Below, piece after piece: positions 24,932 through 62,328 of a stretch of 64,000 nt of DNA. The stretch's first letter is position 1. The number at the start of each line of letters is the position of its first letter. The translations under genes and the position numbers were made by a program. This DNA is from Pavona decussata (Eukaryota), in the NCBI GenBank assembly GCA_977016875.1, contig CDRNST010000080.1, positions 806,001 to 870,000 of the forward strand, given 5' to 3'. The notes under the pieces are model-generated. The model did no database searches. It was not told the origin of the DNA and was given only the letters and a program-made list of their open reading frames with translations.

Positions 24932-27900
24932 TTAATTTGCTTCATTTATCCACGTGAATTCGCTATAGTCAATTTCTCCATCGCCGTCTTCATCCAGCAT
25001 GTCAATCAATTTGGTCAGCTGATCATCCGTCATGGGAACTCCAATGCCCTTTAGTCCCGTTCGAAACTCCTCCCTGGTCACTGACAAGCTATTATCTTTG
25101 TCAAACTGGTTAAACAGGTCTATCAACCGGTAATTCTTGTCCTCTACGTACTTTTTAAGGATGTAGATCAGGTCATTCTTCTTGTTTTTCCCGTAAATAT
25201 CGTCAAGGGCGTCCAATTTTTCCGATCTTTTGCTAAAAGTGCAGGTGATTGTTAAACCTGGGTGTTGCCCCATTAGCAACTTTACAAGTTCTTGGGTCTC
25301 TAATGTGACTACAACACTGTTGAGAAGGATTTTCTCCAAGGCGGTGTCCACGTTGTTTTTCATAGCTGTGAGCAAGGCAAACGCGCCGTTATTTTGTAGT
25401 GGATTTAGTCCAATCCTGCAAGATACAAAAAAAATCCCGGTGTGTGGACTAGTATGTTTAGTCTCTTCTGTAATTAAAGGGAAGTATCATGGGTTTTTTG
25501 GTATCTTTTGTTAAAAATGATGAAATATGACCTTCAATCAGCTGCCAAATAATTATAGAATGACGAGAGGAAAGAAATCAACTCAATTCTTGAAAGGAAC
25601 AACTCGTGATATGTTCTGGCGCATTTTGGAAACAAAAATGCGAGAACTTGAAAAACATTAGGCTAATATTTTTCAAGTTTCAGTCCATACTGGCCTACTC
25701 TGTCTCTAGTCAGAGGCACTAATCGACAGTTTCATCGCACTGGGATGATAATTTAAAACAAAATTAGACAATTATTTCTTTGTTTCTGCTGACAGAGAAA
25801 CATTTTTGGGTTTTGAAATGACAGCAAATTTGCGTGTACTTCCCCTTTAAAGGGACTATGTAAGCTGGGGCACATGCGCAGCAGAGTCCGGTTGAGACTA
25901 ATTTACATGTAACTCGTCGCAGGATTTTTGCTTTTCCGCCATTGCAAAAGCTTTCAAAAATATCGCAACAAACATCTTCTGTAATTACTAAAGGACGTTT
26001 GTAAATTAAACATTCAGCTAACTTTCCCGAAATGAACGCGATTCAAACAGATTAAAACAGCTTCCTGAATTCTCCGATGGTATTTGAAAAAGTTGGCCAA
26101 CCATTGCAAAGAGATTCTCATCAACGCGCGCATGCGCCTGGGGTGACAGAGTGTCTTTAAGAAGACGAATGAGTTTAGCCCAATCTTGCAAACTACACAG
26201 ATCATGTGACTAACTCAATTCCAATTAAGTATAAGGCCTGGGTGCTAAATCAAATTCCAATGCCAAGTAATTTCGGCGTAAAATTTGATACCAAGAAATT
26301 AAAAAGAAAGCAGGTTAAATTAAAAAGGCAGCTTTTTCTGACAAAATTTGAGCAATGTAGCTGAGAAAAATTAAAGCAGTTACGTTTTCGACTGTTTCAA
26401 CTCGGCTTTGTAAGGGTTTATAGACAAATGCATGAAAGAAATAATACATGATTCAGACGTTTTCAACATCTACAAAATCCCTCAGATTATCTGATCGCTA
26501 ATTTGTTTATATTTCAAATTTAAGGAAATTGTCCAAGTCGGATTTGGGATATTTCCCAGTTTGGGCAATTGTTCCCTCATTTTCCAAAAGATAAAAGCTA
26601 TGATCCTTAATTATCGCCAATTATAGATTGTATTCCCGCAATAATACACTCAGAGTCCCAGAATTGACCGAAGTCAAGAAAACGATACCAACAGTGATAG
26701 TTCACAAACCTTAGAATTTTTAAAGTGTTGTTGATTTGAAGGCCTTTAGCAAACGCCAACGCCCCTTCAGTAGAGATTCTGTTGTTGGTCAAATCCAAAT
26801 CAGTCAATGTGTTATTCTCCTTCAGTGATTCCCCGAACGCCGCGGCCCCTTCGTCAGCTAAACCATTCCAGGATATGTCGAGATTCTGCAAGCTACAGTT
26901 GGCACGAAGACCTCTGCCGATGGCCACTCCTCCCTTGCCGCGCAAGTGATTCCAGCTGAGATTTAGATATTCTAATCCACCGTTCGCGTCAATGGCGGGA
27001 CCTAAAACAGATTTAGTTCCTTAGATTTAGAAACGATTTTTGGCACAGAGTGCAGACAATGACGCAATTAGGATTTTGCACTGATTTCAGTCGCCCAAGT
27101 CACAAATAAAAATTGAATTTTACGCACTCTCTTCTTCAACTTTTGTGCCATTTATTTCTCAAACTAAAGTGTAAGTTATATTGTTGGTTCATTCATCGCG
27201 TGGTTAGCTGTCCAATTTACGGCGATTTTTGGGAGCGGATTTTCTGAGGTTTGAATTACATTCAACTCGACTCAATGAAATATGATGTATGAAATGACCG
27301 TAACTTACTCCTAGAATTTATCATGATGAGTACTTCGCGGCGTGCTCTAAATCTAATAAGCCAGCAAAACGTTTAATGTGGTGCGACACACTTTCAAAAA
27401 GCTAATACAGCACATTATTATTTTTTTTTTTTCGAAAAGCGACCAATCGGGGCGATTTACTCTCAATAGAAATCACAAAGAAACTTCTGTATCTACGTTA
27501 TGCTCACCAAATAACATCCCGGCCTCCTCTGCAAACCCATTATGACTCAAGTCAAGCCATGTTAATGTTTGATTGACGCGGATGCCTTCCGCCAGACACT
27601 CTGCATCTTTGTCTTTAAAATCATTCCATGACAAGTTTAACTTCTTGATGGTGCTATTATCACTAAGCACCTCTGCCACGGCCTGGGCGCCAGGGCTCTT
27701 GATCTTGTTTTGAGACAGGTCCAATTCAGTTATGTAGAAGTTTTCTTTTAGTAACCTGGCGATGTAACCGGCGCCATCAGGACCTGGATAAAAAGAAATA
27801 ATACAGTGGCGATGGCTGAAGATAACTTGTGGTTATGAATGGGACAGTACTTCTATTTGACTCTACAAAACTCTTACAGCTTGTACGGTAGCGAGGCAGC

Positions 27901-35830: not shown

Positions 35831-36068
35831 ATCATAACACGGTTCAACATTTGTTGAGCAACAAATGTTGCAGCTGCTGTTCAACAAATGTTGAACAGTG
35901 TATCATGTGATGTTGAACGTTGAAATATGCCGTTCAACATGTTGAAAGTTGTTGAACGAAAATAGAGCTTGGCTCTATTCCGTTCCACAAGTTACAAGTC
36001 AACAAGTGGCAACAATGTTCAACATTTGTTGATCAACAGAAGTTGAACGATGTTGAACCGTGTATGAT
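35831..36068. mobile_element. MITE rich in TCAACA/TGTTGA motifs
   Basis: Ends ATCATAACACGGTTCAACAT / ATGTTGAACCGTGTATGAT. Confidence 0.75.
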
Positions 36069-37308
36069 TCGCTAAGTTGCACCGTTTTGTGACTATAAAA
36101 AAAATACGTTGCGTTTCCCTGACAAACTGATTCTGGCAGCAGAATTGCAATGATGCAATGATGCCCTTGCCCCACATCTGCCGAGCTAGTAGCCGACTGA
36201 CAGAACTTTAATAAACTTTAATAAACGAATAACATTGCTGGTGGTGGTTTTCTTAAATTCACTTCTTCTTTCCAGGCTGGTTTACGGAAATCGTGCCCAT
36301 GATTTACACGCGTTTTGCATAATTTGGCACTCGACACTTTGAAAGCAATTTCTTCAAGAAAACAAAGTAAGAGAGATTAATATAGTGTATCCAAGGGAAA
36401 GATTTATATGATGTTCTATAATAATGTACAAAAATCAAGAAAAATCCTTTTAAACTCCGTCATCGATCAGTGTCGTGACGATATCGAACGAGCTTATCGT
36501 TCTGCCAGAGTGATGTTGAACGATCGGGAGGTGAATTAATATAGGTTCCCAATATATGTTATCAGAATATTGTCACGACACGTTTCTTAGATAGTACGTA
36601 ATTGTGAGCCCGTTCGCGTGTCGATCTAGCCGAAAATTTCAGACAAAGAGTATAAACGAACTACTTTTCTTGAAACAAGGGATTCGGTGGACACTGAAAC
36701 GTAGGTCATTCTGAAAACCAAGCACCAAATAAAGTTTAATTTAGTTTCGTGGATTAATGCCATATTCATTCAAATGACAAAAAATAGTTCATTGTCATAA
36801 AGTTGTTTTCTGTGCCGTTCACTGACAAAATACCAAGTCGGTCAGTATGGTTCTCAAACTTGAAAGAGATGTTTATAACTTCAACACAATTCCGCCAGGG
36901 GGAAATGATCAGCATTTTATCGCAAACTAGCAGTTTAGTAGCAAGTAGCTACGTGTAAGGTAACATTTTAGAACATTTAAGCAGTGCTCTTTGTCGAACA
37001 GTCTTGTCCGCGACACGTATGTGCTTGCTGTCTTCAATTAGTCGAAAGTATTCAAGTGTTGCGCTGTGGAGTCGGCCGGAAAGATCCCCACCGTAATACG
37101 GAAATGATTCGTTCACAGTCACAGAGAGGTACAGCCGCCAAGAAGTTCAGTTCTTTCTCCGTTGACTGATAGATTTATAATTATAATTAAGAGTGTTATG
37201 GCTCGTGACAGTAATTAAACTTAATATCATTAAACATGTTGAGTTTATAACCTGAAGTCTGATCTCAGTTCATTTCAGTTGGTCATCAATTCAGCTCATT
37301 TCGCTTTG

Positions 37309-37572
37309 TTAGACTTGACCGTTCCACTCGGTTGAGAGGTACAGACCAGTTCGGAAGTTACTAACGCCTCTGTCTGCTAACAAGTTCCTTTTCTTTCGAA
37401 TTTCGTCAAAATAGCTTGAAGCAAAATCCACCAAATCTTCAGGATTGGGTTTTTCATTTAGCGCAGTAATCGTGAATCCCTCCATGAGACAAATAAGTTC
37501 CTCTGTAATACAAGCACGGCGTACGAATTTAGACGACAACTTTCTGTCAGCAGAAGATATTTTTTGGTGCAT
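37309..37572 (-). CDS. RIIa D/D-domain microprotein 1 (87 aa)
   Basis: ITEELICLMEGFTITALNEKPNPEDLVDFASSYFDEIR fits the RIIa dimerisation/docking pattern. Ends EWNGQV*, as does its paralogue. Confidence 0.75.
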   Translation of the reverse strand: MHQKISSADRKLSSKFVRRACITEELICLMEGFTITALNEKPNPEDLVDFASSYFDEIRKKRNLLADRGVSNFRTGLYLSTEWNGQV

Positions 37573-40500
37573 AACTGTAGCAGTGTCGCTTTAAGTTCGT
37601 CTCACTTCTAGACCGATCACAGCGGAGAATCAGCGACTTCTTCGTGATTTTGTCGTTCACTGGACTTTGAGTAGGGTGCAATAGCGTGCTCACTTAATAA
37701 AACAAAATTACCTCTCACGCGATGTTCAGCGACAAAGAGTTTTCAAAACGCTTGGATGAAAATAAACGGCAGTGCAATCATTAATATAGATACCGCTTTT
37801 GACCAAATGAAGTGGCCGGAGATAGCACAATGAAATAACTCTCATATTGCCCGGTCTGGTTAGCCAAATAAGATGTTAAAACCCACATTTGTTCCTTGTA
37901 AGTCGCATAATTGGCTTAGGTGAGGGATTAGAACGGATAAACATAGCTTGTCATCCGATAAGTCGCTCACGGTACAATCACGCCGTGTCACAGGGCTTTT
38001 ATCGAAAAAATATCATAATGCTAAGGGTAATTAGTTCCTGTCGCAAATACAGCATATTTTGAATATCTATATGTTCAAGCACAGTATCAACTATTCAACG
38101 TAAATTTTGTAAGCCCCTTCGGTGTGAATTGGTAGACACTTTGGAAAAGTCTTCAATTTTATCTGCTCGCCATAGACCGAGCAACATTTGCTAAGCTATA
38201 GCTAGGCTTATCTAACTTCACTCAACCTAATCAATGACTTCTCTTTTTAAAGCAATATATTAGAGATTCATAGCTAGATAGTGTAGCCATGTTTTGGAGC
38301 CCCGCTGGGATACGTTTACCGCAACAAAAATAAAACATAACAAAAGCCGACATAAAAATCGCAGTAAAGAGGAGTGTAGAAAATTAAACGATGTAGCACA
38401 TGTTAACAAACACGTTCTCGTAGACACGAAACACGAAACCCTCGCTATTAAACGGTTTAGATCCTGATGAAAAGTCTGTTCACAATTGAAGAAACTTCGG
38501 CTCCCAAAACGGCACTTGCTCAGCAACTCTTTTAGAGTTTAACACTATGCAGGCCAGTTTACATAGAAAAAAATAAACTTAAAAACCCACAACTGCAGTC
38601 TAAAGTTTTTCATTTTGCACACATGATTTAGGCGGATTACGAAGAAGGAAAAAAATAGATTCACACTAGCGCGCGATTTCGTTCTTTTAGAATTATCTTA
38701 AACTGATAAACCACTTTTAAGAGTGAAGCTTTTGTAAATAGTGGAAAACGTTGACGTTAATTTTGTTTTCACTTTTAAAAACACTCTCGATCGACGAGAG
38801 TGCAAATGTAGGCTAAATTTAAACGCTCAGTAAACCTTTTCACAATCTCTGACGCAATCTTGGTTGGGGGCAAAGACACGTCTAAAATTAAGCTTACTGG
38901 AATCAGTAAGTGTATGAGATTTGGCCGACTCTTCAACCTCTGTAACTCCACTTGAAATTTGACTCCCAATATATCTATTTGTCTTAAATTTCTGTGAATA
39001 TGTTTAGACAATAGACTCAAGCTAGAACGGCCGTAAATCAAATTTCTAAACTTCATACAAACTCTTAACCAAAACTGATGTACGCCGAATTCCCGCGAAA
39101 CTACAAACGACACGAGGGGATTTCTCTAAGAAATGTGTGACGGTCTCGTTTTTCATCAGATGAATGATTAGTTGAGATATTTTAAAATAATTCTTAGTGT
39201 CTAAAATCTGTCAATTTGGAGCAGAGTTACAGACGGTTCAAGTCACCTAAATTTCCATATATCAGTTTAGTACAATTTTAGTTGTGTTTGTCTGCTCAAC
39301 CAAGATGGCGTCTGAGACGTTTAAAGAGGTGCTTTGTCGTAACGCTTTTGTTTCGACTGTATGCCTTAACTTCGCCACAAGATCGCGAAGGACCTTGCTC
39401 TCATTATGTATGTATTCATTTAAGGAGTATGCACGAATCGTGGTGATTGATCCCCCAGAGAATACGCGAAATATTTCTTACAAGATTTATTGTCGTTCTT
39501 AATAATTTATATAACATCACATGCTGTTTATAGCAGATCAATGGCGCAGGTTTAACAACAAGTTTGTAGGACTAATTAGCTTTGGACTTAACTGCAGCTG
39601 AATTCGAAAAACAAAATCTAGTCTCTAAAATTAATGGTAAAAACCAAAAACTATCTTATAATATGACACTCAACCAGCTAGGGATAGATGAACTCTACGC
39701 TCAAATGGGTCTCCATATGACATGTCCCCTTTCCGTTGGTTGAGAGCCAATCTTGATGGTCTGCAGTTCTCCTCACACTCTTGAATGCACGAATGTCCTT
39801 AACAAGATCACGGCACCCAGCAGCGAGGGCGTATTTCAGGATTCAGAGAGCCTCAAAAACTTAATACCGAATTTTTTTTTTAGGAGTAATTGAAAATATT
39901 TTCTCCTTGACTGTAATTCCACTACTACTGCTTGAAACAGACAAAGGTGTGCAAGTGCACTGGATTGCTACTTTGTAACAAATGAATCATAATTACATTC
40001 ATACCTTCATGAAGGTGCATGATGATGAATCATTCAGTGTTGGGAAGTGTGTTATTAATCTTTGTACATTTCTTGGCGGTCCTCAGAAAAACAACGGGAA
40101 ATGCCTTTAATTGAGGTTTTGTGGAGAACGTGAGAACATGACGGCAACTGAAATTTTCAATCTTTTTATCATCTTGGACAGTGTTCCTAACAATTTTGTT
40201 CCAGGATAATTCGGCTACAATGTACTAAGTTGAACGAATAAGTATAATGGTCAATAATCGCGAAGTAGTGCAAGTAACGAAAACATATATTTTCAATCAA
40301 TGCAAGCTGGAAACTTGGACACAAAAACTGCCAACTTTAGTAACCTAAACTATTACGGTAATGCGCTATTATGATATACTTTCATCATCTGCCAACATTA
40401 TATTCCTACATCAGATAAACACCTACCACAGAAATTTGGCTAATGAATTTTATTCTTTTTTTTTGTAGGCTGTTGAAATGTATCCTAAATTAACTCAGAG

Positions 40501-42298
40501 ACATTAGGATTCTGTTAACTTGAAATTTCATCCTCAGATAATTTGCAACGTATTTGTTTAACAAGCCTTCAAGCTGTGAAGTAATTTTTAGAAAAATACA
40601 AAAACAACAAACAAATTTGACTATGATAGAAAACCCACCTGGCGTCTGGGTCTGCCGGAAAACTCAACGGCACTTCAACCGGCAATGTAACTCATACAGT
40701 TCGATACACTGCTACTTTAATAATTATTTCTTTCGGCCTAGCGATACTAAATTCTGTGTTTTAACAGGAACATCTTACATCTATTAAAATTCAAAACTAA
40801 AACAGAACCCGTTTACTTCGGCTCAGCGTTTTACATGAGCGACGTTTTCAGTTCTTTTTTCAAGCGAATATAACCAATGGCCGGTATCAAAGAACTTTTG
40901 ACAAGTCTTAAAGGTTGACGGAATTTGGAAGCGTTAGTAAAGGAAATAAATAAGTATAAATAAAAATTTAAATATTAAAAAGAGAAGCGTCCTAAACTGA
41001 GTTTGGTTTACTCGCACCAGCATAGCCAACCAAAAAAATTCGCCGAAAATATCGGGAGACAATTCGACACGCTTTCGGCACGTTTCAGATGTTTGGCGAC
41101 CTGAAAAATGGCACGCGCCATTTTAATCACTACTGACAACGGAAAAGATGGGAAAAATGATCGGAAAAGATCTACTATAAAGATAAATCTTTTCCGTTAT
41201 GTACTAATTAAAGTAAATGTTGACAAACAAGAACTTAAACGTCACTGCGGGCAGGTGGAGTGCCCGGTATTTGACCCACTGACTCCTCCGGAGCCGCTAG
41301 ACAAACAAGGACAGGAACTGACACTCGAGAGTCAGGGTGCGGGTAATGCTTGGGATTTTAAACTACATGCCTCTCGAACACATGTTAGCTGCTGTTGTGT
41401 GATACACACGTACACAACTGACTTCAGCGGCTTTGCATTGAAGGTAATCTGTGAGTGGCCTACTGGGCAGTTCATCTGGACTTTGACCAACCTGGCGTGC
41501 GTTTCTCAAACGGTCCTTAGAACTTATCAGTTTTTTTTCCGCGTGCACTACTTTCGCCATGACACTTCACTACTCCTCTTAGTTTCTTGAGTTCCTTAGG
41601 AAAGCCAGCCTCAAAAAATACTCCTACATGAATTAGATTATTCATTTTACACGTATCCGAACTTCACATTTCAGACTTTTGAGGTCTACGCATAAAGTCG
41701 ACTGATTAAGCCTACCACTACTTTTTCGCGCGCGCGTTCTAATTCTCTTTCGATTATCTTGGCGCTTCGCGTTCGATATTCGGGCCCAACCAGCTAAGAT
41801 GCCCCTGTCCATAGAATTAGAAAATGCGTTTCAGCAAATCTCGAACCCAGAGTCTTCAGGCTTTTTTGGTCGGGAGAGATTCTGGAGAATTCCAAAACTT
41901 ATTTTTTTTTTTTTTGATTGGCGGTAATAAAATTTTAGTTCGCCAGAGTCTCTTCCTAGCGACCAACCGCTGGCCGAAGAGCCAGAGGACTTTAGATACG
42001 AGATTGCTAAAGCTCATGTCGCCTCATGTGATACCGCTGGTCAAGAAGTGTGATTGCTCATTAAATTAAAATGCACACAACACCCAGTGTCTTCCAGCTG
42101 TACACACCGAGAACACCCTGGGGCATGTAATTCGGAGAAAAGAACGCGCGCAAATAAGGTGACGTAACAAATTATTATAACTACGTCACAACGACTCCGT
42201 AAGAAAATAAGTAAATAATTCGGTGTAAAAAGGACCGACTGATTTGAACTGACTAGCTTTTTTCGTGCAGTGATTCTCACTAAGACCAACCAAGACAG

Positions 42299-42538
42299 AT
42301 GGATTCCAATTTACCCATAGATTTGCCAAAACGAACCATTCCTCCTGGCCTTGTGGAGCTACTGGAAGGGTTTGTGCTTGTGGTACTTCGTGACAAGCCT
42401 CAGGACTTGGTGGAATACGCGTCGCAGTATTTTTCCCTGGCCAGAACAAGAAAGAATTCTCTGAAAGCCCATGGAGCTAGTGTGGATGATCTTGGAGTGG
42501 ATTTTTTCACTGCCTCAGAATGGAATGGACAGGTGTGA
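42299..42538 (+). CDS. RIIa D/D-domain microprotein 2 (79 aa)
   Basis: IPPGLVELLEGFVLVVLRDKPQDLVEYASQYF closely resembles PKA RII-alpha [32 protein letters not shown] as recalled. Ends EWNGQV*; AATAAA at 42684. Confidence 0.85.
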   Translation: MDSNLPIDLPKRTIPPGLVELLEGFVLVVLRDKPQDLVEYASQYFSLARTRKNSLKAHGASVDDLGVDFFTASEWNGQV

Positions 42539-42976
42539 ACGGGACAGTAACAAAGTCACAAGAGAACAATAGCGATTTGTACCGAACTGTATCATGTGCG
42601 AGCATTTGTGAAGGGTTAGAAATTGTCAAGAATGTGAAAATCGCTTTTGAAATTGTCCAGTTTCGTTCCTCTAACTTTCAATGAATAAAACTATAAAGCC
42701 AAAACCTGGTTAGCAGTCAGATACATTGGTTGAAAAAGTTGGTCTTTAAAACCAGCAAAAATTCGAATTTTAATAAAAATCACTTTTGAAACCTCGCTTG
42801 TTTACGGAGATATGGGCACAAGAATAGAGGCTTCTAGCACAACCGGGGTAGAGAGGAATTAAAGATTGAAAAGAAAAATTAAATTCAAGCGAACGTGTGA
42901 AAAAATAATCGCCTCCAAGGGCTCATTTCCTCTGACCAAGGGCTAATTCAGCACTCTAATCTCTTTTCGGTGGCCA

Positions 42977-43153
42977 AATAGGCCATTTCCGAGTTGCTGT
43001 GAACCTCATTTTGAAAGCGAGGCTAAGTGCAAAACTTTTCATATGAAAATTAGTTTTGTTTGCATATGAATGAAAACTAATTTTCATAATAAAAACTTTG
43101 CACTTAGCTTTGCTATCATAATGAGGTTCAAAGCAACTCGGAAATGGCCTATT
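42977..43153. mobile_element. Palindromic MITE nested in a Penelope-type pLTR remnant
   Basis: AATAGGCCATTTCCGAGTTGC ... GCAACTCGGAAATGGCCTATT. The flanks (CTGACCAAGGGCTAA...GGTGGCCAA | ACCTTA) resemble 29993-30070. Confidence 0.8.
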
Positions 43154-44227
43154 ACCTTACCAACGCTGTCAATAAAACCAAATATTCATAAAAATATAAT
43201 AGAGCCCGGGTAGCCCGACAGCTGTTTTGCCATTGCTAGGCCTTATCAGCAGGGGTATCATATGAACAAATCAAGTGATAACAGAGTGTACAAGGCTGCT
43301 GCCTAAGAAAAATTTTAGGGAGCCCTTCGGGCTCCTAAAGTTTAAAGTTAGGAGCCCGAGCCACATTGTTAGGAGCCCAGTTTGAAATCCATGTATTGTT
43401 TTTCCAAGATCATTACATAGGTTATAGAGGTTCTTGCACACTTTAATAAGAATTCGCCGGGCCTAATAAATAACACGTAAACAAGAATTAACCGAATTAT
43501 TTACTTTCATTTATTAATTTATTCAATTAACTTCCACATCTGTTGTGTTCAATGTGACCTAGAAGAGCCTTCAAAGAATTTTCTAAAATGTAACAATTAA
43601 ACTGCTTCTTACCTTTCTTATACACATTCATGAGCCGGAAAAATATTTGAGGGGCTTAATTTGCGTGTAAAAGGAATTTTCTCAATTTTCACAATAAAAG
43701 AATAACATAACAGTAGGTAATTTCAACTCAGAATTATTTACTTGACTTTCACATTTGTTCAGTAACAGTTGTGTTCCACATGACAACTTAACTAGTCTTC
43801 CAAAAACTTTCTAAAGTAGACCAATCCTCTCCTTGCCTTTTTTATACAAGAACAGGAAAAACAGAACAGAACATCAAGTGCCTTATGTAAACCTTAGCCT
43901 GGATGGATCTCATTAAATGAAGTGCTAAACATTTGAGGAATCATTTAAATTGAATAACATTTTCCTATCTGATTCTGTGCTATAAAAGAATTTTATGTCA
44001 ATGTAACTACATTGTAAATTCAAAAGATCATTTTTTTAAGTCTTATAAGTTCTCCAAAACAGCTCGGAGTTGTCCAAAACAGCTCCATTTTAGAAGAGCT
44101 TAATTAGCCCCTCAAATAGTACTGTATTTTACTCAAGGAAAAACTCCCAATTTTGGGTCCAAAACAGATCCTTTGAATTCACAGTGTAGTTTACAATAAA
44201 TTAAATCACAGCATTGAGCAATGTTCA

Positions 44228-50330: not shown

Positions 50331-52156
50331 TTATTTTCCTTCCCTCTTCTTACTCAGCACAGCCTCTTTAGCTGCCCTCCTCCGCTCCACTGTAAGCATT
50401 TCAGCTCGTTTTACGCTCTTCGCATGAGGGTTCAGCTTCATTAGGATGCCGATGTTCTTCAGAGGATTCTTCTTACGGATGGCTCGGCGGGTCTTTGATG
50501 GCCTGAAAAAAAAGTTGGCAACTTATTACCCTTCCCGTCCTAACCTTGATGTAATAATTCCCTTTCCTGTATTTACTAATTGAAGGGGTGCATGGAAGAA
50601 GGCCCTAATTGACACTTGATGTAAGATCAAATTCTCCTTTTGTTTCACAAGTGATTACAAAGCAATTAGGAAGGAGAATCTGGCAATTTATTGGATTTCA
50701 CTAAGGGCTTTATTTTCAGGCACCCATTCAATTCTAGTATACAGGCCTCCTAAACGGGGGTGTTGTGGATCCTTAATTTTACAGGGGTTAGAATAACACG
50801 CGACCTACCGTCTTCAAAAGAGTCCGATAAAGTTACATTATGGTGGACGTCAATCAACGAAAAGCCATCTCAATTATTTTAAATTCTGACAAGATTCCAA
50901 GGTAACCCAGCAAGAAACTAAGAATTTTACCTCGCTAAGATAATAATAATAATCTTAATAATCTTTAAGAGAAGGTAAACTTTATTTAAATTGATTTCTG
51001 AGCCAGATCAACGGAAAATAAAAGGTATTTTTGAATTAAAAATTCTAATTTTTACTGCACGTGATAATTTGCTCACTTGCACACGTCACTGATTTTGCAA
51101 AATTATTATGGGTAGCTATTATAAAATGTTACAAAAAAGGTTTCATCTAAACAATGCCCATTCTTTTAGATAAACTGGCTTGGAAATCAAATAATTTCAA
51201 TGGCTTTTCTATGATTGATGTCCACCAAGGTCGTGTGTTATTGGTAACCACTGCAATATGTGCTTAATTCACATTCATTTCCTGTACTTCAGTCACTTTA
51301 CATGTAAAAGCTATTACCCATGAGGGTTCTGTCAACATTATAAATAAATTTACATTTACTTTGGAGAAACTCTCTAGAGAAGATCTGACAATCATTGTTA
51401 CGTTAAAGCTAGGGATAAAATGTACCATCTACAAATCTGTACATTTTTTAATAGTGGCACATATGTACAACGCTGCAAAATCTTACCTCTTACTTTCAGT
51501 GTATAGATTTTGGTTTCATATGTAAACAAATATTGTTTTTGCCCTTAGTTTTCAAGCAAACAGCCCACAAATGAGCCAGACAGACAAGAATCACCAAAAA
51601 CTGTGGCCTATTTTAGCCCTTTGAAATACCACTGTGTGATAACGAGAGAAATCTGGCAGCAGCTAAATGAAAGTTCTTACAAGCATTTGATGAAATCTCA
51701 TTCCTCAAAAAGTGACAGCTAAAGGCCCTCACAAAGCAAGGGAAGATAGTGTGCTTTTTCTTACCCTGCAGGTCTGATAACAGACTGTATCTCCTCGCTG
51801 TTGATCAGACGATTGAGGTCCGCATTGCTCATGATTGGCCGTGGAAGGCTGTTAAAACAAACAAAACTATCAAATAAATGCTACTTAGTTCTATACAAGA
51901 TTTAGCATGTTTCATTCACCAGAATTTACTTGGCGAGCATCAAGCCAAGCAAAGGCTTGACTATCAAATGAAATAACATCAACAATGAGGTATTAACTTA
52001 TAAAAAACTAACATTTGATTTGATTTGATTTGTGTTGTGTTTAGTTGAATTGATTTAAATTGCTTTGATTTAAAAGGGGATACCCTCGATAGGGATAACC
52101 TCTGGTATCTCCTGTTCATGGTATCGATGTTTACATTGTTCAGATTGAAGAAAGCC

Positions 52157-52202
<46 letters not shown>

Positions 52203-55200
52203 TATTATCATTAACTTACTTGAAATCCTTCTTTTCAGTGGATGGTTTCTTCCCTGTTCCATACAAGCCATCAAGCTTCTCAATTGCTCCTTTGCTCCAG
52301 ATACAGAACCTAAGAGTAAATGTATTGCCAAGAAATACATTGAAAACACACACCTTGGGGCTAGCAGTATTGACACTTTTTGCTAACATAGTGAGCTACT
52401 GGGAGCAACTGACTCAAGTCAAATTTTCTGCCTTTCTTCAGTTTTGTTCAGATTTCAAATTATTTCCAAAATAATGTGCCAGAATATTATGCTATTGATA
52501 TCACAAGTTTCATATTTCACCTAAAAGGTCATATTGCTGAACCGTAAATATGCAAGCTTCAGAGAGTTTTGTTCAGAAGAAAATTCATTAGTGAACTATA
52601 AAAACCTTAGAGTGCATATTTCTTGAGGCTATCAGTCTGATAGTTTCCCTTGGAAATTTGACGTTCTGAAAACTAGCCTACAAGTCCTCCAAGCTTTGCA
52701 TCACTTTTCCTACATCAAACAGTGATGTACCACGTATGAACACTTTTATGCCAGAAACTTGAGAAAATTTGGTAGTGAACTATAAAACAAGATAAAAAGT
52801 TGAACCACCTGTAAACTTCTGGTCCACTTAAGAGAGGTGTCCACTTATGGGGAATTAAAAAATTTAATGTAGTGTTTGTATATAGCTGAGAACATGACCA
52901 CGTGTCCGGTTACAAGAAGTGTCCGCCTACAGGAGGTGTTTGTTAGCTTTGGTTCAACTGTAATGATACTAAATTCCTTTTACCTGCCCATGTGACCACC
53001 GGGACAAAGCTTGAGGAGATTCAAACGATCCACTGACAGAATATCAACGCCTGGTAAATTGCGGAAGGCTTTACTGATCCCATGATCTTCATTGTAAATG
53101 ATGAGTGGTCCTTTGCGCATGACGGTCCTGCGGTTACGCATCTTGCCCTGATTTAAAATTTTGAAAGAAACAGTAAATGTAAATAACAACTTAAGCAAAC
53201 AGTCAGGTACAGAAGTCAATACCTGTAGTCCTTGCTTTACTACATATAAGATCCCTAGTTTGTTGCAGTACCAGTTAAAAGTTGACAACGAGGATCAAGT
53301 GGAGAATCGCAACTTGATTCACTCAAACTCTTCTTGACCCCTACTATTACATGTAGATTTTTCAGGAGAATTGCTGATTCAAAACATCCCTAATTATTCA
53401 TACAAGAATCTAGTTTTGGAGGAACTCTTTATATCTTGAGGAAAAAACAATAATTGCAGATGCTGGTCGCTTTACAAGCACAGAAAATAGAAAGGCTTGT
53501 GCCGCAGATCAGGTCAGTGGAATCAATCTGCATGTGAAAGATTGGGTAACAAGAATGGTCTCTATGGCCTACTGGGTGCAAATAAAAACCTTCAATAGCC
53601 CACTTTGAAAAAGAGTGATGGCCTGGGTCGAGAGTAACTACCCAAGTGATTGTGGGATTGTTTGGGGGGACGATGGCTATTGTTATCGTCCCCCCAAACA
53701 ATCCCACAATCGCTTGGGCAGCTACTCTCGACCCAGGCCATCACTCTTTTTCAAAGTGGGCTATGGAGCAACTTCTAGGTAAAGTTTCCGGTTGGATAAA
53801 GCCAAAATAGCAACTTCTACAAACAGAAACCCCTTTCAATGTCATAAAACGAAAACAGAAGCCTTTTAACTGCCCTGTTGAAAATTCTGGGAAGATTTCA
53901 CTTTTACTTCAAATCTTTTTTAATTGTTTTTACCACAGGGAGTCGCAAAATTAATAAATTTTCATCAATATTTATTATAGGCAGCATTACTGCTTCTCCC
54001 TTCGGCAGTTTTGCAAAGTTAGTATGAATCCTACATTCGCTGTTTATTTATTTGATCATCACAAGAGCGACAGTGCCTTTTCACTTCTTGCCAACTTGAG
54101 CCAATTTTAACCCTAACCCATTCAAAAAAACTTGGCAGCAACCTCTTGGAGTCTCAATGTTTCATTGATTGGCATTAAATATTTTTTGTTTTGGTTATAA
54201 AGTTTATCGAGGAATCAGTTAAGCAGCAAGCTCATTATTTTTTCTCAAACTCATGAGACGTGATACTCGACTCAACGAATGGGACTCAAAAGAGACTCTC
54301 AACTTACTTTTAACCGGTACGGTAAACATAACAATTAAAATTACTTAATAATGTGATCATCTAACTTATATAATAAGGAATTTTATGAGCAACAAAGTGA
54401 TTTAATTACAAAAAAAGACAATGTGGAAGTCTCAGCAGAAAAAGAAATATGCCAACCATATTCCTTTGAAAAACTGAGAAAGAACTAAATTCACCCCTGG
54501 CACTAACGCGAATATAATCAACTTACTTTGCCTGCACGGATCTTTTTAGATTCCTTGCACTTGTCGACATCCCCATACGCATTAACAGCTTTCAACAGTT
54601 TAACAGCAGCACTTGTCTTCTGCAGGGATTCAATGCTGTCAGATACAACAAGTGGGACCTCAGGGATCTCATCCACACGATGACCACGAGCCATGACCAG
54701 TGCGGGGAGAGCTGAGGCAGCCAGTGCTGAGCACATGGCAAAGCGACGCTGTTTCTGGTTGATCTTACGGTGCCAGCGGCGCCAGGTCTTTGTAGGTGCA
54801 AACATACGGCCACCACGGCACATCTAAAATTAATTACAAGTTAAGGATGCTAAAAAACAACAAAAAAGATAATGCTATCATAAGAACATCTAGCTCAGTT
54901 CACTGTGTATAATTATAATGGTTCTTAATTAACAGGAGACTAAGTATAAAATTTGCATTTTTGACTTCTCAAAATTCATTAACTGCTTTTATTTTGCACA
55001 ATGTCATTTTGAAGGAGATTCAACCCTCTCCTACCTCATGTACTATTTCTAATTTATTTTCAGTGACGAAGGTTTGAGGTTATGTCAGTCATCACAAGAC
55101 CAAAGGGGGCAGTGTTTGAAAAAGAACATTTAATCAACGGTGGGTACTTAACGAAGGAGATATGGTAATGAAATATGAGTTATTTTATCACATAAAAGTT

Positions 55201-57262
55201 ACTGAATGCTTAATTTCTGGAGAAGGCGTTTTAAATACTATACTGCCAAGTCCTTGCTAAAAGACAAGAGCAAAAACCTCTTATTTCTTCCAACAAACTC
55301 TGCTTTGCACTGCATTTTCAACTCAGCCACTGTGTGTTCATACATATAAGTAATGAAAACAATCCAATGTTTGAAACTTCCAGTACCAACAAAACCTAGC
55401 AAAAGCACAAAACTATCTGAATTTCTGAAGCTTTCCAAAACAATAAATGTGACTATATCCACCCTTGGCCTGTTCACCAGGAGTCAACAAAGATAACCTC
55501 ATACAGCAGAACCAATTTTACAGTACAATAATTTGAATATTTTATTGTGGAAAGGATACATTGCCAAAAGCACCCTGACCGGAGCGATGGGTTCCACCAC
55601 CCCTCACACGAGGAATCCTGGCCACAGCACGGCCTGTACCCCAGGACTCGGCAGAGGTCTGGTGGCCAGCAAGCTTGTTTACAGCGTACGCTTGCCGCTT
55701 ATTCTTGGCCATATTGGTGTGCACAAAGCCGACCACATCAGGACGGATTGGAGCTTTGAAGACAGCAGGGAGGGTGGTCTGACCTGCGTTTTCTCCTGCC
55801 TCATCATAGATCGTTATTAAAGGTCTAGCCGCCTTATTAATAATGAAACAGAACAGAATCAATACCACAATTGAGGTAATCTTGAAGGGGATTTTTAAAA
55901 AAATTATTTCCCTCTGCCTTTGAGAGTCACGAAGGCATGAATTGACAGTAAGAAGTTACTTTGTTTCAAATATAAATTAGAAACATTCTTATAACAAAGA
56001 ATTTGGTTTTCATTCATCAACCAAGCAATTTCACTTTTGGAAGTTGAAAGTAATGCTTAGAGACTTCTTGGTTGAATTATCAGCACAAGTTCAGGGTTGC
56101 GGACAGATACAAGTAACCTCATTTTGACATTTTTGCTAATTTTTGGAAATTTCCAAGTGAAACAACTAATTCCTTGTACAGCAGATTCAATTTCATATCC
56201 AAATTAACTGCCAAATTTCTGCCTAAATTGACTGTTTTGAACTGTACACAACATGAATTTGGAGTAAATTCAGCAAAAACTGCCAAACAACCAGGATTTA
56301 AGGCCGGTGTACACGCCGTGATTTGCCAGCCCAACTAGTCAGCTCGACAGTATCAAATCTTATCTATTTTGACAACCAAATTCAATGTTGAATTTGGACT
56401 GACATGGCAGTTTCTTTGAGATTGCTGGCCTGATTTAAAAAAAAATCAGACTTTCTGAATCGGGCTAAGTTCCATTTCACAAATCAGCTATAAATTGGGT
56501 GACTAAAAACACAATCTGCTCTAGCTGGATTAAGAAATCAGGCCAAGCCATCTCACCATGTAATCCGGCAAATACAGTGCAACAAGACATAAATAATAAT
56601 CACCAAGAAATTATGGTGCTACTGTATCAACAACTGTGTCAGTAATCAAACTATAACAGCAATGTTATTAGGAGAAGGAAGGGGGGGGGGGGGGGGGGGG
56701 CAGTGCTTACAAATGATTTTCGGATAAGTTCACTTGACAAGCAAATAATCTCGTCAGTACCAAATATATAAACACAGCAACCAAAAAATTGATAGTCTCC
56801 AAATTTGGCAGTGAATTCTGTTGGGTTATTGAAAGCAAGCAATAGACTCCCGCTAGGTGTTCTTTAATGTTCTGGAGCAATTCACAGAATAATTTTTTTT
56901 AAATCGAACTTCCTGGATAAAAGGGACACTTGGACGAAGTTTGAAGAAGGTTGTTCGTTTGGACCGGCTGAAGGCTTTCAATAGGAACAGTCCAATATGA
57001 TCCAACGAACCTACAACTGATCTTTTATACCAAAACCGAATTTATATATAAGACATAGAAGCTCACGAGAATCCACGTTGTGAAATTCGTGAAATGCAGT
57101 GGCCAACTACACAGAACATTCTGATAGAATCTGTGGATGTTTTACCCTCAAATCTGGCATATTTGTAACTTGGAATTTAATGAGTCTATTTGAACTACAT
57201 TTATGCTATTACATGAACAAGAAGGATACAAAAAGTTCAAATTATTCCCTTCCACCTACCAT
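50331..57262 (-). CDS. RPL4: 60S ribosomal protein L4 (uL4), 360 aa, 7 exons
   Basis: Exons 57260-57262 (ATG), 55560-55832, 54527-54823, 52984-53147, 52220-52309, 51765-51848 and 50331-50502, all GT-AG with consistent phases. Signature peptides [47 protein letters not shown] and KKNPLKN. AATAAA ~20 nt after the stop. Confidence 0.97.
52157..52208. repeat. (TTA)n microsatellite in RPL4 intron 5
   Basis: Read directly from the sequence. Confidence 0.95.
53595..53764. repeat. Near-perfect 170-bp palindrome (MITE-like) in RPL4 intron 3
   Basis: About 80-bp arms with 3 mismatches and a ~10-nt loop. Confidence 0.9.
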
Positions 57263-59544: not shown

Positions 59545-60042
59545 TCAAGTGTAAACAACAGTATAAACGCTCACTCCAAAGGCAGCAACATTGATCAGAA
59601 CTCGCACTAAATGAGCCCTAGCCCACTTGACAACACGATCCACCACATACGCGTGTTCCTTCTTGGAGCAGGTATTCTCATCAAGGATAGGATCGATGAA
59701 ATACGGCTTCAAAACCAGCAAGGTGTAAGGCATGTTAAACAAGAGCAAGCCAGCGACGATCAGCCAAGGAAAACCCCGGGAACGGTCCATATAGTACACG
59801 GCAACACCGGAGAGCTGAGGGAACACGGACAGGCTCATCATGAGACGGGCACAGCGATGGAAGCTTGTCAGCCATTGGCGGTGAATTGCTACAGGGTCTT
59901 TCATGGTCATTCGTGACGGTTGCTCCACAGCTACCACGTACATTGCTATGCCCGTCATAAGGCCGCAAAGAAACGTGTTGATGAACTCGATCAGAAGAAA
60001 AATCTTCTCTGGATTCAAATCGGACACGTCAAAGCTTGCCAT
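59545..60042 (-). CDS. DUF1772 / anthrone-oxygenase-like four-helix membrane protein (165 aa, intronless)
   Basis: ATG at 60042; the ORF-track extension upstream uses a non-ATG start. Motifs G.AMYVVAVEQPSR, RQW..SF.R, PYT..V.KP and W...H.VR; clearly paralogous to 61855-62328. Confidence 0.8.
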   Translation of the reverse strand: MASFDVSDLNPEKIFLLIEFINTFLCGLMTGIAMYVVAVEQPSRMTMKDPVAIHRQWLTSFHRCARLMMSLSVFPQLSGVAVYYMDRSRGFPWLIVAGLLLFNMPYTLLVLKPYFIDPILDENTCSKKEHAYVVDRVVKWARAHLVRVLINVAAFGVSVYTVVYT

Positions 60043-61854
60043 AGCAAAGTCGTTTTGGTTGCACTTTTGATCGCCGAAAAAAAATTTAGAGAGTATAAAC
60101 TGACGCTTACTATAATTAGCATTTGGCAAAGGGACGCTAACCGCTTGTCAAAATATACAATCACATTACACCACCCATGGCGTGATAGCGTGACATGACC
60201 TAAATTAATTTTTAGGAGCAAAGAAAAACTGTGACAGTTGTCAATAATGGAAAAGGGTTAGGTTCTTGGGCAGGTAGGCCAAGAGCAACGTAAATTCTTG
60301 TGTGCATGCAGAAAATAATCAAAATAAATCAAGCCGTCTATTCCCAAATTTATTGGTGAGAAAGCGAAATTGTGATTGGTCATTATCTTGTTGAAGGTAG
60401 AATGGACAAGATACGGTTGAAATTAATTTACATTGGCAGGTTATTGACACGCAACTTGTGACAGCAGGGGTTTCATTTGGTAACAAGTCACGAAATACGT
60501 CTCCTTTCTTCTCAGTCCTAGAGCCGATGTACAATGTAAGCCCCGCTCTAACCTTGCAGCGTAACAATACAAATAATTTTCATGCACCGGCAGCTTAATT
60601 AAACTATAGTGCTGCTTATTTCTCCAAATTTTACCATAAAATATTTTCTTTTCACTTCTGAGACGTGAATGGGTCAAAAGTTCAAAGGGAATATCAAAGA
60701 AAAGTTTAATTTAAAAAGCGTAAGTGATCCCTCCCTGGTACAATAATAGCGTATGCAAATCAGCCGAGGATTCTGTGACGATCCATCTTGTGTTCAACTC
60801 AGACAGAAAACTGACCTCAAAAGTAACACAGCTGTAAAATGAAACCAGAAGACACTTTGAAGTTAATCAAACTCGCCTCAACAATAACCACGGGAATCAT
60901 GGCTGGCGCGGCGCTTTATACCATATCAACCATAGGGGGCCCACACAATGTGTCTGTGTAGCCGATTGTTATTATATAGTAAATGCACTGGATTTACCGT
61001 TTGCTTCACCTATAGCGATATATCGCTAACTATGTATATAAATCAATGATAAACAAACGTTGAATTACCTTATCTGTGGTATATAGTCGTCCTTTTACCT
61101 CAAAAGCGGTTTTGTGAGCGATATATATGGAACAGTCAACGGCGAACTCAAACTCCTTCAAAATCGCTCACAAAAGAGACCAAGGTTTAGACTACAGACT
61201 AGTTACACACGTACACCACGGTTATAATCTGTGCTATGGTAATTCTGCACCAGTTAGCCGTATGTCAACAGAACAAACAAATTAAACATTATTTCCATGC
61301 CGGACTCTCATAATCTTCGCTCTTTGCGTTGATATATATATTTCATTTTGTAATAAATATAATTCACTAATCTGACCCCCACTGTAATTCAGTTACACGT
61401 AGCCTGCAAAAGTGGTGAATAAACGTATTTCACATTGTATTAGACTGTAGATGGATATTCCACGTTCAATGATACTGGAACCAACCGATAAATTCCGGAT
61501 ATAAGCTCCTTCGAAAATTAAAGCCCACCGCCTGAATGAAAGCCCCACAAATTTCGGAAGCCGCAAACATGCTTCCGGATTTACTATAACAGAATTCCTT
61601 TTTGTCTTCCTATCAGTATATTATGTTTTTGAACTTATTTCATTTTCTATTTTCTTTTTCTTATTACTTTTTGTGTTTACGTCCTTTGCGTGTAATTTAT
61701 GCAGCTGTTATCATGAATTAAAAATTCCACCCTTTCTGTAATTAAATTCACCAGTGTCTGTTCACGTAAGCTGTACTGAGACTGCGAGCCGGAACGGACA
61801 TCGCGCGCGAAGGCAAAACTTGTGTCGTGAATCGTAATCAATCTTTATTGAAGC

Positions 61855-62328
61855 ATGGAGGCCGAGGACGCTCTCAAGGTTTTGAAATTCGCATCTACAG
61901 TCGCTACTGGAGTTATAGCTGGTGGTGCGATCTACATTAACCTTGTGGAACACCCAGCAAGGATGGAACTTGATGACGTGCAGTCGCTTCATCGCCAGTG
62001 GAGAGAGAGCTTCGACCGAGCGAAATATTTGATGGCGGGTACGTCGCTATTACCGATAGCCGGTGGAATTGCCGCATTCGCTATCGACCAGACCAAAGGA
62101 AAACCTTGGCTTATTACAGCAGGATTGTTGGCGTGTAATGTACCGTACACTGCAATAGTCATGAAGCCTCGAGTCATTGATCCTATATATGATTATGAAG
62201 TCGCTGGCAAGAAGGACCCGGGTGAAGTTAGGGATACAGTCGATGAATGGAACACTTTTCACAAGTTTCGCACTGTCGTCGATTTGTCAGCTCTAGCCTG
62301 GTGTGTCTACAACTTAGTGTACAATTGA
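61855..62328 (+). CDS. DUF1772 / anthrone-oxygenase-like four-helix membrane protein (157 aa, intronless)
   Basis: Strong Kozak context (AGCATGG). Motifs GGAIYINLVEHPAR, RQWRESFDRA, PYTAIVMKP and EWNTFHKFRT. Confidence 0.85.
   Translation: MEAEDALKVLKFASTVATGVIAGGAIYINLVEHPARMELDDVQSLHRQWRESFDRAKYLMAGTSLLPIAGGIAAFAIDQTKGKPWLITAGLLACNVPYTAIVMKPRVIDPIYDYEVAGKKDPGEVRDTVDEWNTFHKFRTVVDLSALAWCVYNLVYN

Follow-up and report, generated by a model that had tools for sequence, protein, structure and literature searches.

The window analysed here (64,000 nucleotides (nt) of Pavona decussata, assembly GCA_977016875.1, contig CDRNST010000080.1, positions 806,001 to 870,000 of the forward strand) contains two paralogous genes, denoted A and B, each with a single coding exon. 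Their products of 87 and 79 amino acids (aa) are little more than a dimerization/docking (D/D) domain of the type found in the type II regulatory subunit (RII) of the cAMP-dependent protein kinase (PKA). The feature is real, under selection and unannotated. A and B belong to an unannotated family in coral-associated assemblies and one octocoral, and in the module of this family an RII-type D/D whose helix II has a basic extension is followed by a G/A-hydrophobic-x-aromatic motif and a W-x-G-x-[V/I] end. Judging by sequence, the family probably began as a duplicate of RII exon 1. Its members may act as decoys or small adaptors at the anchoring sites of PKA.

A selected gene pair with a true C-terminus

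The two open reading frames (ORFs) are divergent (head-to-head) and lie 4.7 kb apart in the ORF listing of the window. A first-pass annotation, made from the letters of the window alone, had described them as divergent ORFs of 87 and 79 aa, and both were confirmed at the coordinates of Table 1. In each, an in-frame stop is located 5-6 codons 5' of the ATG, and the frame finishes in EWNGQV followed by a stop. The tail codons quoted in that annotation are exact in the window DNA, namely GAG TGG AAC GGT CAA GTC TAA in A and GAA TGG AAT GGA CAG GTG TGA in B; all codons that are free to vary do differ, the stop included. The quoted basic segments (RKKRNLL in A and RTRKNSL in B) are also present, and the description of the genes as intronless holds for their coding part. 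A and B are 38% identical across 71 residues (E 2e-16), which makes them paralogues, and hence their shared tail reflects common descent and not chance. An Rfam scan of positions 36000-44000 gave no match.

In both window copies the Gln codon of the tail is followed by GT, and a splice donor is for this reason the chief rival reading of the tail. A and B would then be the first coding exons of longer genes or, alternatively, decaying fragments of RII, both of which we consider highly improbable. Eight copies with flanking DNA, from up to five genomes, were inspected: five of B (window, L009, L017, L018 and L019, where L-numbers denote loci) and three of A (window, L017 and L018). The stop directly follows the last Val in all eight, while the Val codon may be GTG, GTT or GTC, the stop TGA or TAA, and the residue before Val Q, L, M or E. 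Further copies in L042, L050 and L052 likewise have the stop right after the final Val. Sequences such as GTTTAA and GTCTAA are, moreover, poor donors. The last exon of the ribosomal protein gene RPL4 (Pfam Ribos_L4_asso_C, E 2e-12) lies on the opposite strand past the stop of B, at a gap of 255 nt in L052/L050, approximately 380 nt in L019, 1.0 kb in L017, 1.8 kb in L042, 3.3 kb in L018 and 7.8 kb in the window, where a transposon is reported in between. Since this exon begins only about 255-380 nt past the stop in L052 and L019, there is no space for more B exons at these two loci. When the 37 kb past A were compared with the 21 kb past B by tblastn, only chance matches were returned, with no coding similarity apart from the ORFs, and we found no shared downstream exon. 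The splice donor at the Gln-GT boundary was rejected on these grounds, and the terminus is a real one, as the annotation had proposed.

The annotation had also stated that cAMP-binding domains are absent, and this is borne out. The cNMP_binding domain (PF00027) has no match in either ORF and was not found on contig C80, which holds the window. When the full-length RII of the same genome was compared to the window by tblastn, it matched just the two D/D domains. A PKA regulatory subunit is recognised by an inhibitor site and two cyclic-nucleotide-binding domains, and A and B have neither; the complete RII genes of this genome sit on other contigs.

Pairwise ratios of nonsynonymous to synonymous substitution rates (dN/dS) are 0.05-0.16 for B and 0.04-0.11 for A where defined, with one near-identical pair giving 0. 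The synonymous rate reaches 1-2.6 and is saturated versus L019. The range of 0.04-0.16 rules out decay and agrees with the protein-level selection claimed in the annotation, which had named a ratio near 1 as the contrary outcome. Orthologues of A with 87 aa and 77-89% identity are present in L017, L018 and L052. The head-to-head pair is also found at these three loci, with A and B 2.9 kb apart in L017, 5.5 kb in L018 (with a retroelement between them) and 1.06 kb in L052; L019 and L042 have B alone within the DNA fetched. The order of an EF-hand/leucine-rich-repeat (LRR) gene, A, B and RPL4 is conserved, and in all relatives examined RPL4 lies 0.26-7.8 kb downstream of B, on the other strand.

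A conserved family beyond the pair

A word search with B identified 20 clusters of small B-type homologues of 74-87 aa (one has 126 aa) and 64-96% identity to B, all of which end in W-N-G-[L/Q/M]-V. None of the clusters comes from NCBI or UniRef and none is named. Most of them come from coral metagenomes. Tara Pacific coral metagenomes and long-read holobiont assemblies are among the source records, from which we infer that the host of the B-type family is most likely a stony coral. An exhaustive profile search added A-type relatives and, in addition, proteins of 191-901 aa that carry the same module as their C-terminus after a long acidic region and all end in W-x-G-x-I. The 901 aa protein of the octocoral Xenia is among these long forms; XP_046858827.1 of Xenia is named 'titin homolog'. 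In this genome the full module was found only in A and B.

The positions with little or no variation across all forms are E23, G24, F25, P34, A41, Y44, F45, L55, W75 and G77 (B numbering). The family is thus defined in part by its tail and by the Leu of its basic segment. The Ser of the B-type basic segment is kept in 20 of 21 sequences. In a maximum-likelihood tree, rooted at the midpoint, the A-type, B-type and long forms make up one clade with 99/99 support. This clade is apart from RII and from the SPA17-like domains of this genome and sits on a long branch, the shortest branches being those of the B-type rows. The annotation had described a pair of microproteins; the pair is real, but it is not a lone one, as the same module is conserved in a family and also forms the C-terminus of long acidic proteins.

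Four candidate relatives were not counted. P0066 and P0073 appear to read through after the final V/L, the next residue being W, which is probably a TGA called as Trp. P0067 and P0078 are degenerate relatives whose differences from normal copies all fit C-to-T changes of the coding strand (P to L/F, A to V, T to I, R to C and H to Y); they are more probably derived from bisulfite-converted reads than pseudogenes.

Sequence and predicted structure of the D/D domain

The gathering cut-off of Pfam RIIa (PF02197) is 22.4 bits. B scores 27.8 bits (E 2e-6), above the cut-off, and 28.2 bits in a six-frame search of the genome. A scores 21.2 bits, just below the cut-off, and 22.4 bits when its in-frame neighbours are included in the six-frame search. 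The earlier claim that each ORF has an RIIa D/D domain holds for B and is borderline for A by this measure; A is homologous to B and matches the D/D of RIIα in the Protein Data Bank (PDB). The latter is the best solved relative of both proteins (E 1e-9 and approximately 50% identity for B, E 3.7e-4 for A). Weaker PDB matches of B are SPA17 (E 1e-4), ROPN1L (0.02) and RSP11, all from axoneme structures. A search of the ESM Atlas returned generic RIIa clusters only, all under 0.9.

For B, the AlphaFold2 model built with the family alignment has a mean predicted local distance difference test (pLDDT) of 84, with helices at residues 18-32 and 37-57, a short helix at 67-71 over V-D-F-F-T and a tail of pLDDT about 66. 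The model of A has a mean pLDDT of 80, the same helix layout and a low-confidence N-terminal helix. In both models the basic segment sits inside helix II at a pLDDT of 89-93. Foldseek superimposes B on RIIα D/D structures (2izy, 2hwn) with a root-mean-square deviation of 0.8-1.5 A and 47-57% identity; the E value is only 0.07 because the domain is short. A model of two copies of B gave an ipSAE of 0.34 versus 0.00 for the best control, with at least 82% of contacts in agreement between runs and a partner pLDDT of 58. Among proteins solved as pairs, 21 of 30 attain this ipSAE, compared to none of 23 solved as single chains. The predicted interface of the B homodimer spans residues 13-52, and its residues match those of RIIα. 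By prediction, B fits an RII-type D/D fold with a symmetric four-helix-bundle dimer. When the groove positions were mapped by eye from the PDB alignment, I14, V19, L22, V26, L27 and L30 of B were found to be hydrophobic.

According to a survey of the D/D superfamily (PMC8339350), members of the R2D2 subgroup open helix I with a Gly, carry YF in helix II, replace the second loop proline with a hydrophobic residue and have a strand instead of a helix at the N-terminus. On inspection B agrees with this description, with G17, Y44-F45, the loop K-P-Q-D-L and no helix before residue 18. A retains the YF and the loop Leu, is without the Gly and has the low-confidence N-terminal helix mentioned above.

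Probable origin from RII exon 1

A BLASTP alignment of B with exon 1 of the canonical RII of this genome (contig C204, where the gene is intron-split) extends past the D/D to a pairing of E-W-N-G with E-V-N-G. In RII exon 1 from many sources (Table 1), the YF is followed at a distance of 19-23 residues by K-G-V-x-F; B carries L-G-V-D-F-F at +20. Human RIIβ has K-G-V-N-F at the same place, and we know of no function for this motif. In a profile comparison by hhalign, the D/D alone was aligned between the family and RII exon 1, and the homology between tail and linker therefore depends on the BLASTP alignment and the motif spacing. What follows the D/D, with G-V-D-F-F and perhaps the tail, looks inherited from the exon 1 linker of RII. 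The annotation had set aside a truncated RII retrocopy. A and B are indeed not retrocopies, but they may be fragments of RII derived from its exon 1.

Separately, we observed an apparently intronless RII-like subunit (RIIa and two cNMP-binding domains) in a single open frame of 391 codons, counted from stop to stop, at G000:C56:928589-929629 (L005). On C93, the best cNMP_binding match (G000:C93:2224052-2224318) likewise lies in an open frame of 391 codons.

Table 1 Coordinates of the features discussed. Positions refer to the window unless a locus is given.
Feature	Position	Strand	Evidence or remark
Gene A coding sequence, 87 aa and TAA stop	37309..37572	minus	ORF list; conserved orthologues
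A C-terminal tail GLYLSTEWNGQV, residues 76-87, conserved	37312..37347	minus	Family alignment; stop after V in the three A copies checked
A basic segment RKKRNLL, residues 59-65	37378..37398	minus	Alignment; predicted within helix II
A divergent RII-type D/D, approximately residues 22-62; predicted helices 24-40 and 44-67	37387..37509	minus	Pfam, PDB match, AlphaFold2
Conserved non-coding block, about 115-360 nt upstream of the ATG of A	37686..37933	minus	Promoter-like: CCAAT box, invariant 12-16-mers
TGACGTAA and CGTCA, a CRE-like pair located 139 and 115 nt before the ATG of B	42160..42188	plus	Hints at CREB/ATF control
Gene B coding sequence, 79 aa and TGA stop	42299..42538	plus	ORF list; 20 homologous clusters
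B RII-type D/D, residues 13-50	42335..42448	plus	Pfam, PDB match, AlphaFold2, Foldseek
B basic segment RTRKNSL, residues 49-55; fits R-[RK]-x-S-hydrophobic	42443..42463	plus	Predicted within helix II
B G-V-D-F-F motif and C-terminal tail, residues 66-79	42494..42535	plus	G66, W75, N76, G77 and V79 invariant in the B-type alignment
RII exon 1 sequences with K-G-V-x-F	L001:1483-1719		Also P0085, P0106, P0114, P0115, P0133, P0174, P0195, P0212
Run of 144 N	1206-1349
EF-hand and TMOD/LMOD-type LRR gene	24938-27778	minus
Interspecies indel, about 250 bp, downstream of A	36073-35821		Skipped in contigs of a related species
60S ribosomal protein L4 gene (RPL4)	50334-55811	minus	Last exon 50334-50513
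Anthrone_oxy-like (PF08592) ORF	59548-60042	minus	Divergent from the following ORF
Anthrone_oxy-like (PF08592) ORF	61852-62325	plus	Divergent from the preceding ORF

Upstream sequences and neighbouring genes

The upstream regions point to separate promoters close to each ATG of A and B. The non-coding block upstream of A is 70-77% identical by blastn to L017, L018 and L052, where synonymous sites are saturated. In front of B, a sequence resembling the cAMP response element (CRE) is located 66-139 nt upstream of the ATG in five of six lineages: the full TGACGTCA is at -66 to -109 in L017, L018, L019 and L052/L050, and the combination of TGACGTAA and CGTCA is in the window and L009. This CRE hints at control of B by CREB/ATF factors. 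The 8-mer TGACGTMA has approximately 6 sites in the 64 kb window. A regular-expression search for RFX X-box-like motifs, which is a weak test, gave no match in the 500 nt preceding either gene in the species checked.

We considered Logan contigs of about 1 kb that carry B as transcripts and rejected them. They are collinear with the genome, sister contigs of the same runs span 2-4.7 kb of intergenic DNA and one contig includes RPL4 intron sequence; these contigs are therefore DNA.

As for the neighbourhood, the EF-hand and LRR gene has a 74% identical counterpart beyond B in L019. The Anthrone_oxy-like ORF on the minus strand is 87% identical to a gene in L017, and the one on the plus strand is its 39% identical paralogue.

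Possible functions

We favour a function in which A and B dock as D/D dimers on amphipathic helices of the A-kinase anchoring protein (AKAP) type and, having nothing to bind kinase or cAMP, serve as a competitor on the side of the regulatory subunit (R side) or as a small adaptor. We put the chances of this at about even. Each protein would form an RIIα-like four-helix-bundle dimer, and the groove of the dimer would dock on AKAP-type helices. As A and B have no inhibitor or cAMP-binding region, they would occupy anchoring sites while bringing no kinase to them and, as R-side decoys or small adaptors, would not be released by cAMP. If the CRE before B confers CREB/ATF control, feedback would also be possible. 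A and B have the attributes of microProteins, being small, carrying just one interaction domain and having a larger regulator as a homologue, and they may interfere with that regulator in the same manner. A more elaborate scheme can be drawn, in which an RII-derived coral microprotein is induced through the CRE at high cAMP, dimerises and displaces PKA from AKAPs as an R-side mirror of AKAIN1, acting as a cAMP-insensitive feedback brake on the anchoring of the kinase, W-x-G-x-[V/I] is a new docking motif, and the octocoral-type long forms reuse the module as an anchor of acidic proteins. As a whole, this scheme seems unlikely.

Several observations weigh against a decoy or adaptor. In the long forms the module is at the end of large acidic proteins, which resembles a docking handle more than a decoy. 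A has a Pfam score below the cut-off as a protein, lacks the P-P-G turn and gives no significant Foldseek match. The result for the B dimer may stem from the model's memory of solved RIIα D/D dimers. In the mapping by eye, B has Arg where RIIα has Ile3, one of the two N-terminal AKAP determinants. With respect to regulation, the CRE is degenerate in L042, with no perfect copy, and CREs are common near promoters. Finally, all public contigs fetched are DNA and none is a transcript, and the ENA records are metagenome assemblies.

The main rival of a decoy or adaptor is structural docking of the cilium type, which we regard as possible but doubtful. A and B would be docking subunits similar to the R2D2 proteins SPA17, ROPN1L and RSP7/11, which clamp a helix of a ciliary, flagellar or other scaffold, and would have no role in the regulation of PKA. 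Most non-PKA RIIa proteins are axonemal according to the main text of PMC8339350, the weaker PDB matches come from axoneme structures, and the use of the module as a C-terminal handle of long acidic proteins would suit such a role. However, SPA17 and ROPN are much more distant from the D/D than RII is, the SPA17-like domains of this genome lie outside the family clade, and the weak regular-expression test gave no X-box-like motif in the 500 nt upstream.

Two further alternatives retain a direct effect on PKA. The annotation had suggested that the basic segment is a substrate or pseudosubstrate, and support for this idea is mixed. In its fullest form, which we find rather improbable, the segment would sit in the active-site cleft of the catalytic subunit of PKA, where B (R-K-N-S-L) would supply a substrate and A, along with the long forms (K-R-R-N-A-L), a pseudosubstrate, thereby giving a cAMP-independent tether or inhibitor akin to the protein kinase inhibitor PKI. 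The pattern basic-basic-x-x-Leu is kept across the family with a nearly invariant Leu55, the Ser of the B-type R-[RK]-x-S-L is conserved as noted above, and two long forms have R-R-N-A-L, which resembles the R-R-N-A-I of PKI. The idea is weakened by the AlphaFold2 placement of the segment inside helix II, whereas kinase clefts take extended peptides. Furthermore, the acceptor position varies over the family (S, F, L, M, V, I, A and E), Pfam gives no PKI family match at E up to 1, and the true RII inhibitor site, in textbook accounts, is about 45 residues further on and needs a cAMP-binding domain for tight binding. It is also improbable, in our view, that A and B are dominant-negative microProteins that pair with full-length RII through the D/D and yield holoenzymes with one arm or with altered anchoring. 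B is approximately 50% identical to the RII D/D, its predicted interface residues appear to be those of RIIα, and small single-domain relatives of larger proteins commonly act in this way. On the other hand, the family clade is on a long branch apart from RII, and the helices of the B-type proteins are nearly invariant among themselves, which would suit a partner of their own.

The first-pass annotation thus holds with regard to stand-alone D/D proteins, a true and selected C-terminus and the absence of splicing to cAMP-binding exons. It holds only in part overall, since the wider family, the probable exon 1 origin and the predicted helical state of the basic segment alter the picture.

Comparison with known systems

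D/D domains are known from PKA regulatory subunits and from a small number of other proteins, most of them ciliary. We know of no conserved protein in nature that comprises hardly anything but an RII-type D/D, and a literature search for such a protein found none. If binding to AKAPs is true, A and B would provide endogenous tuning of kinase anchoring that is free of cAMP, as well as a compact natural reagent for studies of the AKAP-PKA interface. The family is also evidence that the NCBI and UniRef records for these animals lack selected microproteins, and it ties the conserved and unexplained RII linker motif K-G-V-x-F to a selected function.

The survey PMC8339350 names PKA-R, SPA17, ROPN1/1L, CABYR, RIIAD1, CATIP, TPGS1 and others, and no family like A/B is among those named in its main text. 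Similar to the R2D2 proteins described there (SPA17, ROPN1/ROPN1L, CABYR, RIIAD1 and CATIP), A and B are non-kinase proteins with an RIIa-type D/D, a domain that docks amphipathic helices, and RIIAD1 is comparably small. They differ in that their matches to this group are weaker (SPA17 E 1e-4 and ROPN1L 0.02, compared to 1e-9 for RIIα) and in that the SPA17-like domains of this genome fall outside the clade. AKAIN1 is an endogenous microprotein that has been proposed to compete at the D/D-AKAP interface and thereby to disturb the anchoring of PKA (PMC11814902). It is, as A and B may be, a natural microprotein that competes with PKA anchoring; however, AKAIN1 binds PKA, on the AKAP side, whereas A and B would compete on the R side, and the sequences are unrelated. 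The R-R-N-A-L of the long forms and the R-K-N-S-L of B resemble the pseudosubstrate of PKI, but A and B have no PKI match, their segment is helical by prediction and PKI is without a D/D. The closest system by sequence and model is the N-terminal D/D of PKA RII (Pfam RIIa, PF02197). In comparison to RII, A and B are without the inhibitor-site linker and the cAMP-binding domains, end at 79-87 residues in W-x-G-x-[V/I] and form a separate clade, while the features shared with RII are the I-P-P-G-L start, the YF of helix II, the symmetric dimer interface (as predicted) and a G-V-x-F approximately 20 residues after the YF, as in RII exon 1.

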